A DNA stretch of 63,848 bases, the filler included, from Octopus bimaculoides (Eukaryota): the NCBI RefSeq assembly GCF_001194135.2. It is 5 parts of 4 records of this genome, joined end to end, with 100 filler letters (N's around TTAATTAATTAA, not from the genome) between each part and the next. Parts side by side here need not be neighbours in the genome. Positions count along the whole stretch, not along the records: positions 14,615 to 38,570 come from NC_069003.1; 4 more parts are not named here. One strand, written 5' to 3'. The translations under genes and the position numbers were made by a program. The notes under the pieces are model-generated. The model was not told the DNA's origin. It worked only from the letters and a program-made list of their open reading frames with translations, and ran no database searches. Positions 18,215 through 30,440 of this stretch are shown here, one piece after another. Position 1 is the first letter of the stretch. Every line of letters begins with the position of its first letter.

Positions 18215-19995
18215 GCCCTTCCTAATACCAACCCCTTTGCAAAGTGTACTGGGTGCTTTTTTTTATTATGGTTCTGGCTAAAGCGAAGCTACCAAGTTAA
18301 CTTGCAAGGCAAGGGAAGAAAGGAACAGGAAAAGAAAAAGAAAAGACAGGTAAAAGGAAAAGAAGGGAAAGCCTCCTTGACTATACGGTGGTAGTGGTGG
18401 TGGGGGAGTGATGGTTCTATGCCAGGGGTTGAGAGGTGAGAGTGTGATGGAAGAACAAGCCTAGATGGCTTGTAATAAAGATACAAGATTGAGTAGTTGG
18501 AAAGCAGGAAAGAAGAGGGAAGTGATGCTGGGATGCTGGAGCATCTCAAGATACAGTGGAACATCAGGTGGGGGAAGGATAAAGGAAGGGAAAGATGTGA
18601 GGTAGAAATGCATGATGGGAGATAAAGGAGTAGCTTGGTGGTGGGGGCCTATGGTCTCAGTGGAGTGAGAGGGCAACGATAGTGGCTGCATGTAAGAGAG
18701 GTGATAAGAATGGAGTGTAACAGAGGAGAGCAATAACTGGAGGTACAAAAATGAAGTGACTGGTGTGATTGGTAGAATTAGTGTGGACAGAGAGGATAAT
18801 GAGAAATAGATGTGATTCTGGGGAGAGGAGGATGTAATGTACTTATTCTGTTCTCAAGTGATTGCAGTAGCCAAGTAATAACATAGATAGAGAAGTGATG
18901 GGTGTTAGGGCATGTGATGTGAGAGAAATGCTTGATGGGGCAAAGGGACAGAGCCCTACATATACAAGCATAACCAAGATGGTTTTAGGAACTCATCTAT
19001 GTTGTGATGGATGTGTCTTCTTGAGCAGAGCAAATTATCAGTCATCTCAGTCCTTTGTCATCTCTTTCATAAGGTTCAGCATTTTGAGATCGGCCTTCGT
19101 TACTTCATCCCATATCTTCCTGGGTCTCTCTCTTCCACAAGTTTAATCCACTTTAAGTGATCAGTGCTTCTTTATACAGCTGTCTTCATTCCCCATCCAT
19201 GTTGTTGTTGGCACTCCGTCGCTTACGACGTCGAGGATTCCAGTTGATCTGATCAACGGAACAGCCTGCTCGTGAAATTAACGTGCAAGTGGCTGAGCAC
19301 TCCACAGATACGTGTACCCTTAACATAGTTCTCGGGGATATTCAGCGTGACACTGTGAAAAGGCTGGCCCTTTGAATTACAGGCACAACAGAAACAGGAA
19401 GTAAGAGTGAGAGAAAGTTGTGGTGGAAGAGTACAGCAGGGTTCGCCACCCTCCTCTGCCGGAGCCTCGTGGAGGTTTAGGTGTTTTCGCTCAATNNNNN
19501 NNNNNATCTGATCAACGGAACAGCCTGCTCGTGAAATTAACGTGCAAGTGGCTGAGCACTCCACAGATACGTGTACCCTTAACATAGTTCTCGGGGATAT
19601 TCAGCGTGACACTGTGAAAAGGCTGGCCCTTTGAATTACAGGCACAACAGAAACAGGAAGTAAGAGTGAGAGAAAGTTGTGGTGGAAGAGTACAGCAGGG
19701 TTCGCCACCCTCCTCTGCCGGAGCCTCGTGGAGGTTTAGGTGTTTTCGCTCAATAAACACTCACAACGCCCGGTCTGGGAATCGAAACCACGATCTTATG
19801 ACCTCGAGTTCGCTGCCCTAACCACTGGGCCATTGTGCCTCCACTCCCCATCCATACGCATCCCATGATGAAACCAGTGCAGTCTTCTCGTTTGCACACT
19901 ACATCTATTTCCTCTAATGTCTAACTTTTCTCTCATTACATTTGCATGTTATACATGCACATTGACGCTGCACATCCAATGAAGCATACCATCTT
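18215..19995 (-). mobile_element. Second RTE-clade LINE 3' remnant, interrupted by a SINE
   Basis: 19020-19200 and 19856-19990 align with 17350-17700 (aaccagtgcagtcttctc, cccatatcttcctgggtct); purine-rich 3' UTR. Confidence 0.7.
19201..19844 (-). mobile_element. SINE family A, full length with 11-bp TSD
   Basis: TSD tccccatccat at 19190-19200 and 19845-19855; the internal 250-bp duplication across an 11-N gap is probably an assembly overlap. Confidence 0.9.
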
Positions 19996-23524: not shown

Positions 23525-23739
23525 TTCCCTCACTCTTACTTCCTGTTTCTGTTGTGCCTGTAATTCAAAGGGTCAGCCTTGTCACACTGTGTCACGCTGA
23601 ATATCTCCGAGAACTACGTTAAGGGTACACATGTCTGTGGAGTGCTCAGCCACTTTCACGTTAATTTCACGAGCAGGCTGTTCCATCGATTGGATCAACT
23701 GGAACCCTCGACGTCATAAGCGATGGAGTGCCAACAACA
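23525..23739 (+). mobile_element. SINE family A, 3' half
   Basis: Near-identical to the body and tail of 721-1064; ends gtgccaacaac. Confidence 0.85.
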
Positions 23740-25733: not shown

Positions 25734-26775
25734 TAGGCGCAGGAGTGGCTGTGTGGTAAGTAGCTTGCTTACCAACCCCATGGTTCTGAATTCAGTCCCA
25801 CTGCGTGGCTCCTTGGGCAAGTGTCTTCTTCTATAGCCTCAGGCTGACCAAAGCCTTGTGAGTGGATTTGGTAGATGGAAACTGAAAGAAGCCCATCATA
25901 TATATATATATATATATGTGTATGTGTGTGTGTGTGTGTGTGTATTTATATATATATGTTGTTTAGGCGCAGGAGTGGCTGTGTGNNNNNNNNNNNNNNN
26001 NNNNNNNNNNNNNNNNNNNNNNNNNNNNNNNNNNNNNNNNNNNNNNNNNNNNNNNNNNNNNNNNNNNNNNNNNNNNNNNNNNNNNNNNNNNNNNNNNNNN
26101 NNNNNNNNNNNNNNNNNNNNNNNNNNNNNNNNNNNNNNNNNNNNNNNNNNNNNNNNNNNNNNNNNNNNNNNNNNNNNNNNNNNNNNNNNNNNNNNNNNNN
26201 NNNNNNNNNNNNNNNNNNNNNNNNNNNNNNNNNNNNNNNNNNNNNNNNNNNNNNNNNNNNNNNNNNNNNNNNNNNNNNNNNNNNNNNNNNNNNNNNNNNN
26301 NNNNNNNNNNNNNNNNNNNNNNNNNNNNNNNNNNNNNNNNNNNNNNNNNNNNNNNNNNNNNNNNNNNNNNNNNNNNNNNNNNNNNNNNNNNNNNNNNNNN
26401 NNNNNNNNNNNNNNNNNNNNNNNNNNNNNNNNNNNNNNNNNNNNNNNNNNNNNNNNNNNNNNNNNNNNNNNNNNNNNNNNNNNNNNNNNNNNNNNNNNNN
26501 NNNNNNNNNNNNNNNNNNNNNNNNNNNNNNNNNNNNNNNNNNNNNNNNNNNNNNNNNNNNNNNNNNNNNNNNNNNNNNNNNNNNNNNNNNNNNNNNNNNN
26601 NNNNNNNNNNNNNNNNNNNNNNNNNNNNNNNNNNNNNNNNNNNNNNNCTTAGAATAAATGCTAGGCTTACAAAAAATAAGCCTTGGGGTTGATTTGTTCG
26701 ACTAAAAGCTCTTTGAAATGGCGCTTTCAGCATGGCTGCAGTTAATTGACTGAAACAAGTAAAAGAATAAAAGAA
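25734..26775 (+). mobile_element. SINE family B spanning a gap (head 25734-25897, tail 26650-26775)
   Basis: ggcgcaggagtggctgtgtggtaag...ttcagtcccactgcg head; gactgaaacaagtaaaaagaataaaag tail. Confidence 0.8.
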
Positions 26776-26907
26776 AGATCAATCTGAAGAATTTGACAGA
26801 GTAATGCAAAAGCTAAGGGCTTAAATACTTTTACTGATTTTTACTTTGAAAAACGGGCCCTATCTAAAATAACTCACCCCCTCTTTGTAGTACACAGCTG
26901 TGTCTTA

Positions 26908-27303
26908 TTTTAGCACATACTCTTTTACTCTTTCATTTGTTTCAGTCATTTGACTGCTGCCATGCTGGAGCACCACCTTTAGTCGAACAAATCACTGTAA
27001 GCCTAGTACTTATTCTATCGGTCTCTTTTGCTGAACCGCTAAGTTACAAGGATGTAAACAGACCAGCATCAGTTGTCAAGCAATGGTGGGTGGGTGGGAC
27101 AAACACAGACACACAAACACACACACACACGCATGTATATACATGTATATATATGATGGGCTTCTTTCAGTTGCCATCTACCAAATCTACTCACAAAGCT
27201 TTGGTCAGCCCAAGGCTATATCAGTAGACACTTGCCCAAGGTGCCACACAGTGAGACTGAACCAGGAACCATGTGGTTGGTAAGCAAGCTACCTACCACA
27301 CAG
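26908..27303 (-). mobile_element. SINE family B, full length, about 200 bp upstream of the transposase-derived exon
   Basis: cttttactctttt...gtttcagtcatt tail to ctacctaccacacagcc head. Confidence 0.85.
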
Positions 27304-27503
27304 CCTACCATCATTAATTTCATCAAAGTCTACTTGTTCCTTAAAATTTCAAAATCTTGGCTAATTAACAAATTTCTGTAAAAGACTTTGTTTTTCTTTG
27401 TTTTACGTTTTGTGTTTTCATTTCAATTGTTTTCCCCAAAGTTAACCTTTTTTTTTATTTATTTATTTTATATTCTTTTTATGTTTTTTGTTTTTCTTTC
27501 TAG

Positions 27504-27775
27504 TTCAAGATAACATCAACATGTTTCCAGTTTTCAATCCTGTGCTGCAGTCACCGGCGACCAACCATGTATCATCTCCAGTCTCTCTTGCACCATCATT
27601 CACTCGTCCTAGCCGTGGAGTCGCTACAGCTTTTCCATTACCCCAGCTGCAGTCACTCAACCAAACATCGGTGCCACAAGTTGCTGCCAAACTTCGCCAT
27701 TCTCAACCTCAACATTCTTATTATCACCATCAAATGCAGCATTTTCCCAAATCATCCCAGCAGCAGCATCAACAA

Positions 27776-27807
<32 letters not shown>

Positions 27808-28042
27808 GCAGCACCTCCAGCATCACAGACAACAGCAACAGCAGCAGCAGATACAGTTGCCACAAATACATCATCTACAGCAGTTGAAGCAGCAACAACA
27901 GCAGCATCATCTGCAGCAGCAGAAACATCAACAAGAAGAACATAAGCTACTCTCACAGTCACCCCATCATGTGTCACTACCATCACAACATCATCAACAA
28001 CATCATCATCATCAACAACAACAACAACAACATCACCATCAC

Positions 28043-28073
<31 letters not shown>

Positions 28074-29320
28074 AACAACAACAGCAGCAGCAGCAGCCAA
28101 TGTTTCGAGTGTACTCTCCTATTCAAGAACCAGGTGAAATACTGTTACCTCCCCTGCAGCCAGTCAACCAGAAACATCTGTTATCATCGGTGCATGAAAA
28201 TGTATTGATGCCTCACCAAGACCAGCCACAGCAATGTCAAGATGGCCAGAAGAAAGCTATACCTCAGCCAAACCCCGAACCACAATCAAAAGAAATTGAG
28301 AAGGACCACAAAAGTACCCAGGTACAATCCCATGTCAATACAACAGTTGGCTATCAGAAGGTGGAGAAAACATGTCCAATGCGATTCATTGATTTATTGA
28401 AGAATTTAAGCCACGTTGAAGGTACAATTGCTTGGTGCATGGACCTAGGCCTGATTCCGTCATCTCATACATGTCACCGGTGTGGTGCAATGATGCAACT
28501 AAAACCTTGTCCAGCTACTGTGACAAGTGATGGTTACATATGGCAGTGTAACAAACAAAAATCTGGTGTCAAATGTGACACTTCTCGGTCACTGCGAGCA
28601 GGCAGCTGGTTCTCCCAGAGCAATCTGACTCTTGAAGAAGTTTTACAGATCACATATTGGTGGACACAATGTGTTTCTGAAGACTTCCTTGTTTACCAAA
28701 CTGCAGTTAGTAAACCGTCTGTTCTTGATTGGTGCAATTATTGCCAGGAACTCTGTTTGACCTACTTGATGAAACAGAGCCAATCCATCGGAGGACCAGG
28801 AACAGTTGTAGAAATCGATGAAGCCATGTTTTATGGTCGGAATGGTCACCGTTTGTCTGGTCAGTGGATTTTCAGTGGCATTCAACAGAAAAGTAACTGG
28901 TCTTGCTTTATCTTCCCAGTTGGAGAAAAAACAGATGGAACTGGTCTTATAGAGGTTATTGAACGCTGGGTGAAACCTGGCACGACAGTCCTGTGTAACT
29001 GGAACCCTACTGATCGTCTCACCGACGATGGACATACATACCTGAAGTTTACATACAATATGACCTTCAAGTGTGTTGAGGATATGGAGGTGAATGATGG
29101 AAGCATCAATGAGAATGGTGATTTGTCTCTGAAGGACACCCCTGTGATTGCAAAGAATTTCTGGAAGGAAATTCGTGCATCTTCCACGTCAACAGATAAT
29201 GTGACCTGTGAAACTATAACATTTGATAGTGCAATGGCAGAAAGTATCTGGCGTAAACAACAGGGAGAAGAAGATATCTTTCTTTCATTTATCAAAGCTG
29301 TTAAATTTGCCTATAGTTAG
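27504..29320 (+). CDS. Terminal coding exon: polyQ/His-rich region fused to a Merlin/ISXO2 (DDE_Tnp_IS1595)-like transposase-derived domain; probably catalytically inactive and domesticated
   Basis: Stop-free frame of about 600 codons. Polypyrimidine tract plus TAG acceptor at 27491-27503 (phase 1); first in-frame ATG at 27521. From M298 (28379; numbering on ORF 27488) it follows Merlin motifs in order: WCMDLGLIP, CHRC...WQC-x8-C, SLRAGSWFSQSNL, DWCNYCQELC, IGGPGTVVEIDEA, GQWIFSGI, WVKPGTTV, FDSAMAESIWRK...DIFLSFIKAV. Confidence 0.85.
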
Positions 29321-29831
29321 TGACTAGGTTAGGCTGGATAGTCCTTCCAAAGGTGAGACTTTGAGGTCAGTTGTGAGGAAAAAGAACAAATTTAAAAAAA
29401 TATATTGCACAAATTGGTCATGGTTTGAGGGGAACATTGATGAGAAAGTGACGTTTGGCATCGTGTGATGGAAGAAAGAAATAGAAGGAATTCATCAAAG
29501 ATTCCCGCTTCTTAGCCATTGATGCTACTGTCTGTCGGCATTCCCCACCCCCAGGAAATGTCATCATGTGTCCCCCCTCCCCCACTACTCTCAATATTGG
29601 TGGAAAGGCATGTTCATCACCAGACATTCTTCACATATTGTTTTGGAAACAAAAGAAAAATATTACATAAACTTACCAAATCTCTATGATTTCTTCAAAC
29701 TTTCCATTACCTGACATTTTATGAAGAGAATGGTAGATTTATGAAGAGAATGGTAGATTTATGAAGATAGATGAATAATGAAGAGGAGACAGACATCCTT
29801 GCCAAATTCATTATCAAGGTCATTCAGTACA

Positions 29832-29891
<60 letters not shown>

Positions 29892-30440
29892 TTTTCTCTC
29901 CCTCTCTCTTTCTTTCTCTCTCTTTTATCATGCACAGAAACATTCCAAGTGCATGCACTGGTGAAAAAAATGGATAAAAGCACACATTTACACATGTATG
30001 TATATATGTACAAACACAAACATCTATACAAACACACTCACATTCACACAGACACATACACACACTCATATATATGTACATACATACATACATACNNNNN
30101 NNNNNNNNNNNNNNNNNNNNNNNNNNNNNNNNNNNNNNNNNNNNNNNNNNNNNNNNNNNNNNNNNNNNNNNNNNNNNNNNNNNNNNNNNNNNNNNNNNNN
30201 NNNNNNNNNNNNNNNNNNNNNNNNNNNNNNNNNNNNNNNNNNNNNNNNNNNNNNNNNNNNNNNNNNNNNNNNNNNNNNNNNNNNNNNNNNNNNNNNNNNN
30301 NNNNNNNNNNNNNNNNNNNNNNNNNNNNNNNNNNNNNNNNNNNNNNNNNNNNNNNNNNNNNNNNNNNNNNNNNNNNNNNNNNNNNNNNNNNNNNNNNNNN
30401 NNNNNNNNNNNNNNNNNNNNNNNNNNNNNNNNNNNNNNNN

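Follow-up and report, generated by a model that had tools for sequence, protein, structure and literature searches.

New DNA-binding regulators have arisen repeatedly through the domestication of transposases. In animals, the catalytically dead DDE transposases that have been domesticated as DNA-binding proteins include the pogo-derived CENP-B, Jerky and POGZ and the hAT-derived ZBED genes. Tetrapod host-transposase fusion genes are a related class, which Cosby and colleagues reportedly described in 2021 as having formed by exon capture. The Merlin superfamily is absent from the usual animal lists. Merlin/IS1595 domestication has been proposed in the protists Stentor, Symbiodinium and Perkinsela (PMC8101967), and ciliate genome-editing candidates of this type have been put forward for Oxytricha, Blepharisma and Loxodes. 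Here we describe a gene carried by a 63,848-nucleotide stretch of Octopus bimaculoides DNA (RefSeq assembly GCF_001194135.2; the window), within the piece that derives from NC_069003.1 (positions 14615-38570). We conclude, with a probability of roughly 0.8, that its long open reading frame (ORF) forms the last exon of a host gene that descends from a DDE transposase of the Merlin/ISXO2 (IS1595-type) kind, and we propose that the product acts as a DNA-binding regulator.

The frame, 27488..29320 on the + strand, runs uninterrupted for 610 codons and is the sole long open frame within the piece. The remaining ORFs of at least 110 amino acids there are of low complexity, cross N gaps or lie antisense inside the gene. 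The last 313 codons, from position 28379 (the ATG of MRFIDLL, residue 298), are homologous to Merlin/ISXO2 (PF12762) transposases, and the N-terminal region of about 280 residues is Q/H-rich and encoded by CAG/CAA arrays. Position 27488 is not the true start of the frame; the exon opens at 27504 with TTCAAGATAAC, in phase 1, and an upstream exon supplies the first base of its Val codon. At the other end, the C-terminus KFAYS* aligns with KFVYS*, and the position of the stop is identical across all orthologues.

Because the window protein itself gave no useful match against Pfam, NCBIfam or PDB sequences, its ancestry was established through intermediates. Against 1.84 billion cluster representatives, an exhaustive search with phmmer yielded 3977 homologues. 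Orthologues aside, the best single-domain matches (P0005-P0040) were proteins about 300 amino acids long, at 30-39% identity and with E values from 3e-41 to 1e-30. The homology to animal Merlin/ISXO2-like transposases covers the whole 313-residue domain. All ten of the near relatives scanned matched PF12762 (DDE_Tnp_IS1595, 'ISXO2-like transposase') at 52-81 bits, compared with a cut-off of 27. Judged by these comparisons, the gene is one that has diverged beyond the PF12762 model, with a Merlin/ISXO2 ancestry visible through its homologues. Two other database proteins, P0003 (1611 aa) and P0004 (1750 aa), each contained 10-12 stretches matching the query, and P0003 carried five PF12762 domains together with repeated helix-turn-helix (HTH) and Zn_ribbon_IS1595 matches in Pfam. 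They look like several Merlin transposase units in tandem that a gene prediction in another genome has joined into a single protein.

The predicted structure has the layout of a Merlin transposase, namely a CxxC…C…C/H zinc ribbon, a helical DNA-binding region, an RNase H-like core and a C-terminal FDS…W(R) helix. An AlphaFold2 (AF2) model made with a 144-sequence alignment reached a predicted local distance difference test score (pLDDT) of 88.4 and a predicted template modelling score (pTM) of 0.85. Its topology, β1-β2-β3-α1-β4…α4, is the canonical RNase H-like order, the fold that an earlier note on this DNA, made from the sequence alone, had proposed to check by structure prediction. In domain numbering, the strands at 40-43, 53-56 and 69-71 and the helices at 85-96, 101-108 and 112-132 were modelled at pLDDT 94-98, and the C-terminal helices lie at 282-295 and 300-311. 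Foldseek searches against the PDB returned retroviral integrases, the ISCth4 transposase and Mos1, with probabilities of 0.97-1.0. In the MAFFT alignment, C32, C35 and C57 (domain numbering) were invariant in 20 family members; the model, the Foldseek matches and these conserved Cys ligands together indicate an RNase H-like fold preceded by a zinc-ribbon/helical region.

To compare the catalytic site, we used two alignments, one made with MAFFT (20 sequences) and one with hmmalign (144 sequences), both including PF12762-positive Merlin transposases; the two agree throughout. The VEIDE segment corresponds to the family VEIDES block, and thus the first catalytic Asp (D444) is kept. At the second position, PGTTVLCN-W stands against the family PGTTIISDCW, so that the Asp has become Asn (N504) next to a one-residue deletion. 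At the third, IAKNFW replaces the family IExxW, and the Glu has become Lys (K556). The basic loop FGKRKYxRG has been lost through a cut of three residues, which leaves FYGR and NG on either side of the gap, and FTYNMT stands where the family has VNHS. The stretch from F(K) to the conserved W is acidic and is longer by 16 residues than the family consensus and by 12 than the Sepia sequence; the inserted loop has a pLDDT of only about 55. By contrast with these losses, FDSAMAESIWR still corresponds to the family FDSYLAEFxWR. In the AF2 model, D444 lies on β1, N504 directly after β4, and K556 just ahead of the helix that usually bears the Glu. The window protein therefore has the triad D-N-K and its orthologues have D-N-C or D-N-Y, as compared to D-D-E in 59 homologues, and the window protein lacks the intact DDE triad that marks an active transposon. 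The remaining full-length homologues were degraded individually and in differing ways, as is expected of decaying transposon copies. The earlier note had described an intact frame with Merlin-like blocks from the zinc ribbon to the C-terminal helix, D444 kept, the Asn and Lys substitutions, loss of the KRKY loop and VNHS, and an acidic insertion. Frame, alignments and model agree with all of this, and a codon check found its numbering of C329, C332, C354, C363, D444, N504 and K556 to be exact. It had also placed the ORF at 27488, from which the frame is indeed open, although the exon begins only at 27504, after the AG acceptor that ends at 27503.

It is conceivable that nuclease or recombinase activity persists in the protein through non-canonical acidic residues (D444 with E441/E445, and D509), a mode of activity reportedly proposed for PGBD5. 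D444 and the flanking EIDE glutamates are invariant in the orthologues, D509 is also conserved, and the model shows a well-folded RNase H core. However, the second Asp is Asn in every orthologue. Where the Glu once stood, the window has K, three lineages have C and Sepia esculenta has Y, which differs from the Cys of a very close relative (synonymous divergence, dS, 0.05). Since the residue varies even between very close relatives, constraint on this site has been lost. Of all parts of the protein, the loop around it is the least conserved and is modelled with the lowest confidence, and the KRKY loop and VNHS, which are conserved in the intact relatives aligned, have been deleted or replaced. 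We consider retained catalysis very improbable.

Intact orthologues were found in four other cephalopod lineages, including Sepia esculenta, at 74-76% amino-acid identity (the set comprises P0001, P0152-P0155 and L007). A search of 5.8 billion proteins returned two 90%-identity clusters with six sequences, at 68-70% identity over the aligned part; across 15 billion proteins these are the only two such clusters. In the exhaustive homologue search nothing fell between 39% and 68% identity, and thus the sampled data contain no paralogues or dispersed copies. Similarly, no second copy was found within the piece, and an ENA assembly has one locus, on a 114-kb genomic contig. The Asp-to-Asn change, the adjoining one-residue deletion and the three-residue loop deletion are common to all orthologues. 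Other database proteins with Asn at the second-Asp site are without these indels and represent unrelated decays. Four D-N-x homologues (P0048, P0054, P0100 and P0130) were examined as possible deeper orthologues. We rejected them, since the KRKY loop is still present in all four and the shared indels are missing.

The ratio of nonsynonymous to synonymous divergence (dN/dS, omega) over the domain (299-313 codons) was 0.03-0.06 among decapodiform lineages, at unsaturated dS of 0.39-1.45, with a bootstrap 95% range of 0.014-0.073. Between the window and its orthologues dS is saturated and dN is 0.15-0.17. In the disordered N-terminal region, omega was 0.36 (range 0.21-0.61; two decapodiform lineages). 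Identity between the window and Sepia proteins is distributed unevenly along the gene (Table 1). Taken together, these codon and residue comparisons show that the zinc-ribbon/HTH module and the RNase H structural core are under strong purifying selection, and they reveal relaxed evolution of the former active-site loop.

We next consider how the frame is expressed. The 587-residue orthologue P0152 is encoded on contigs of 3.8-4.9 kb. Such contigs occur in 25 sequencing runs, and 24 of the contigs were read; three of the runs are Sepia esculenta RNA-seq from three published studies (SRR20545809, PMC9538352; SRR25097171, PMC10571815; SRR31864757, PMC11917092). The ten contigs retrieved carry a 5' untranslated region (UTR) and 34 codons (MVEPAKEKEFLRKKFRVEEVLKKKFKLCDASLFE) joined to VQENNKF.... 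The Sepia esculenta mRNA L010 joins this exon 1 exactly at the acceptor that is conserved in the window (27503/27504). Compared with the unspliced contig L019, which encodes a protein identical to the mRNA product, L010 shows no difference over the 1800 nt that follow the junction. Ahead of the junction the two are unrelated, and there L019 has a polypyrimidine/AG acceptor. The same acceptor, at the same codon position, occurs in the cuttlefish-type genomic or unspliced contigs L001, L019 and L008 and in the window; the spliced form was also seen in the more divergent lineage L007, and the 114-kb genomic contig has an intron of more than 4.5 kb. These results show that a spliced Sepia mRNA carries the frame as its last exon, behind a distant promoter. 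The poly-A end of L001 was rejected as proof of polyadenylation; it is ambiguous, as the Sepia mRNA carries an encoded A-run there. L010 also contains, at nt 150-200, a palindromic TGACGTCA (cAMP response element-like) site within a GC-rich stretch of its 5' UTR/promoter-proximal part, and its GC-rich 5' end is unlike the AT-rich surroundings of the coding exon.

Active Merlin elements have terminal inverted repeats (TIRs) of the form 5'-GG…CC-3' and target-site duplications (TSDs) of 8-9 bp (PMC8101967). No inverted-repeat pair bracketing the ORF was found within 26660-30060. This bears on the possibility that the frame belongs to an ordinary Merlin copy that is inactive, or to a non-autonomous family, and is open by chance or through recent insertion. 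Merlin homology is clear, and degraded triads are also seen in many database Merlin-like ORFs. Yet the 610-codon frame is open despite saturated synonymous divergence from its orthologues, the inactivating changes and indels are common to lineages, omega is 0.03-0.04, the acceptor is conserved and spliced to an exon that is not of transposable-element (TE) origin, and neither TIRs nor additional copies were found. The orthologues, the shared lesions, selection, the pattern of constraint, splicing and expression, and the lack of TIRs together exclude an ordinary transposon remnant, which we regard as hardly credible, and support an ancient host gene. The favoured reading is that immobilisation and recruitment took place before the octopod lineage split from cuttlefish-type cephalopods; the age so given depends on the assignment of the window to an octopus, which its saturated dS to cuttlefish makes plausible. 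The earlier note had argued for host recruitment under purifying selection, with no TIRs, and had named many near-identical copies as the finding that would speak against it; the shared lesions, intact orthologues, low dN/dS, splicing and copy number all uphold its argument, and no such copies appeared in the sampled data. Transcription, which it had proposed to check, was seen in Sepia esculenta, where spliced RNA-seq contigs exist; in the window only the conserved acceptor was seen.

Several observations weigh against the interpretation as a host-encoded DNA-binding regulator. The window protein had no match to PF12762 at E<=1, and the Sepia orthologue scored 16.8 bits, below the cut-off of 27 bits; in the model search that the earlier note had proposed, the relatives match and the window protein itself falls short. 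As to synteny, when the 16-kb decapodiform locus L008 was compared with the piece by tblastx, the gene alone matched and no conserved markers appeared in the flanks. The piece offers 12.9 kb of sequence ahead of the exon, with several N gaps, and no credible match to exon 1 turned up there when we searched with a 22-nt pattern allowing 3 mismatches, with tblastn of the Sepia exon-1 peptide and with short-word blastn of the Sepia 5' end. The window's exon 1 either lies further upstream, falls inside an N gap or is too diverged. The databases hold no protein or transcript of the window's own species, as judged also by an exact look-up from M12, and the conserved acceptor and intact frame are all that points to expression there. 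Residual metal binding is possible, since D444 and the neighbouring glutamates are conserved. Finally, DNA binding, nuclear localisation and dimerisation are all properties that we infer.

On our interpretation of the locus as a domesticated gene, the protein would no longer cut or join DNA and would be a sequence-specific DNA-binding factor. The zinc ribbon and HTH would bind DNA, possibly at sequences descended from Merlin terminal repeats, and the dead RNase H-like domain would serve as a scaffold for folding and dimerisation. The long, Q-rich, disordered N-terminal region might behave like an activation or condensate-forming domain and recruit partners, and the basic exon-1 peptide may help nuclear import. 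Given domestication, we think it somewhat better than an even bet that the protein functions as a sequence-specific DNA-binding regulator. Alternatively, the same domesticated gene might control transposons rather than host genes: the dead transposase would occupy Merlin terminal repeats or poison active multimers in a dominant-negative, P-element KP-type manner. In favour of this, Octopus vulgaris still has Merlin, with 2 families annotated and 11 recently active insertions (PMC13282606), and the parts that are conserved are a DNA-binding module and a multimerisation-capable core around a dead active site. We nevertheless judge it improbable, because an omega of about 0.03 over deeply diverged lineages with saturated dS contrasts with the much faster turnover of TE families, and a long Q-rich tail with a dedicated upstream exon and promoter is more typical of transcription factors.

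How does this gene compare with the described systems? From Merlin transposases and elements it differs not only in the catalytic site but also in being single copy in the sampled data, in having no TIRs or TSDs that we could find, and in its Q-rich N-terminal extension and, in the orthologue, an upstream spliced exon. With CENP-B, POGZ and the ZBED proteins it shares a retained DNA-binding domain, an RNase H fold without the triad, purifying selection, and a host promoter and exon; unlike them, its source is Merlin and it is confined, as sampled, to coleoid cephalopods. The protist cases belong to the same superfamily and likewise have ORFs preserved without TIRs or TSDs, but they are from unicellular organisms, are often multi-copy by segmental duplication and mostly come without tests of orthology and selection. 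The ciliate cases are discussed as possible active excisases, whereas the cephalopod gene is metazoan, single copy, spliced and catalytically dead. As in the host-transposase fusions, the transposase ORF is a terminal exon behind an acceptor, joined to an upstream exon and promoter. In contrast to those fusions, the upstream exon encodes just 34 residues, in which no domain of the KRAB or SCAN kind can be recognised, and the effector-like Q-rich region shares its exon with the transposase.

In the literature, subscription journals aside, we found Merlin/IS1595 domestication proposed for protists only and no cephalopod or other animal case, in line with what the earlier note had said of cephalopods. 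The gene thus appears to be the first reported animal example for this superfamily. It offers a clean case of domestication within one lineage and from an unusual source, and introduces no new principle. If true, a Merlin-derived gene under strong constraint across coleoid cephalopods would add a superfamily to the animal catalogue. TE expansion and regulatory novelty dominate genome evolution in this clade, for which the gene would provide a candidate regulator that is dated and lineage-specific. From the zinc-ribbon/HTH module one would expect a specific binding motif, and from the dead active site no cleavage. A fuller proposal, which we offer tentatively and rate slightly below even, is that this first animal Merlin-superfamily domestication gave rise to a coleoid-specific, single-copy, transcription-factor-like gene predating the octopus-cuttlefish split, with a conserved DNA-binding module and a fast-evolving Q-rich effector tail, possibly wiring Merlin-derived sites into cephalopod-specific regulatory networks.

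Table 1. Features of the Merlin-derived gene, in positions along the window, with amino-acid identity to the Sepia orthologue
Feature	Position	Strand	Identity to Sepia	Basis
End of intron: polypyrimidine tract and AG splice acceptor (…ttgtttttctttctag, followed by the exon)	27447..27503	+		Sequence read; ...ttctttctag ends at 27503
Last coding exon, 605 codons and TAG stop (29318-29320)	27504..29320	+		Frame and orthologue comparison
Q/H-rich low-complexity N-terminal region (Q-rich tail), fast-evolving, predicted disordered	27504..28333	+	20%	Tandem repeats; identity to Sepia
Best-conserved block, made up of a short linker, the CxxC…C…C zinc ribbon and three helices (helix-turn-helix-like); presumed transposase DNA-binding module	28334..28777	+	78%	Identity to Sepia; AF2
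Zinc-ribbon Cys codons C329, C332, C354, C363	28472-74, 28481-83, 28547-49, 28574-76	+		Codon check
RNase H-like (DDE transposase/integrase) fold, catalytically degenerate	28778..29317	+	75% (N-terminal half)	AF2, Foldseek, PF12762 homologues
D444, first catalytic Asp, kept (GAT; VEIDE on β1)	28817..28819	+		Alignments
N504 (AAC) in place of second catalytic Asp, just after β4	28997..28999	+		Alignments; common to all orthologues
Former active-site loop, residues 511-570			35%	
Lineage-specific acidic insertion/variable loop (EDMEVNDGSINENGDLSLKDTPVI)	29078..29149	+		Alignment; pLDDT ~55
K556 (AAG) in place of catalytic Glu	29153..29155	+		Alignments; Cys or Tyr in decapodiform orthologues
Conserved C-terminal helices (FDSAMAESIWRKQQ…FIKAVKFAYS)	29222..29317	+	72%	Identity to Sepia; AF2 helices; family FDSYLAEFxWR block

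Within the N-terminal region, the CAG/CAA arrays (27758-27850 and 27985-28097) are long and almost pure, and their translation gives runs of about 20 Gln and of His/Gln. The cuttlefish orthologues have a Q/S/T/A/P-rich region instead, without homopolymer runs, and thus the polyglutamine expansion is specific to the window's lineage; the tract may be length-polymorphic. In the SRR27666070 contig L007, a one-base frameshift near nt 225 distinguishes the Q-rich region from that of the other orthologues and leaves the domain intact. It is either a low-complexity assembly error or a real lineage-specific N-terminal change.

Other repeats were observed around the gene. Some 500 bp ahead of the exon, within the intron, a perfect 17-nt inverted pair (26690-26706 and 26978-26994) encloses a second pair of 47 nt with 87% complementarity (26728-26774 and 26921-26967); the whole, 26690-26994, looks like a miniature inverted-repeat transposable element (MITE)-like or foldback element. 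An open frame at 38238-38570 (+), beginning MTGYRMHHPKSDIERLYIQRTEGGRGLIQLENYY…, reaches the edge of the piece and has no Pfam match; we take it to resemble the tail of a retroelement ORF. The peptide string SLTLTSCFCCACNSKGQP.H.V occurs in ORFs at about 19253-19330 (-) and 23540-23600 (+), some 4 kb apart, which suggests two copies of a repeat in inverted orientation, and a related pattern, HKALV.PRL, is present near 27200 and 36850.
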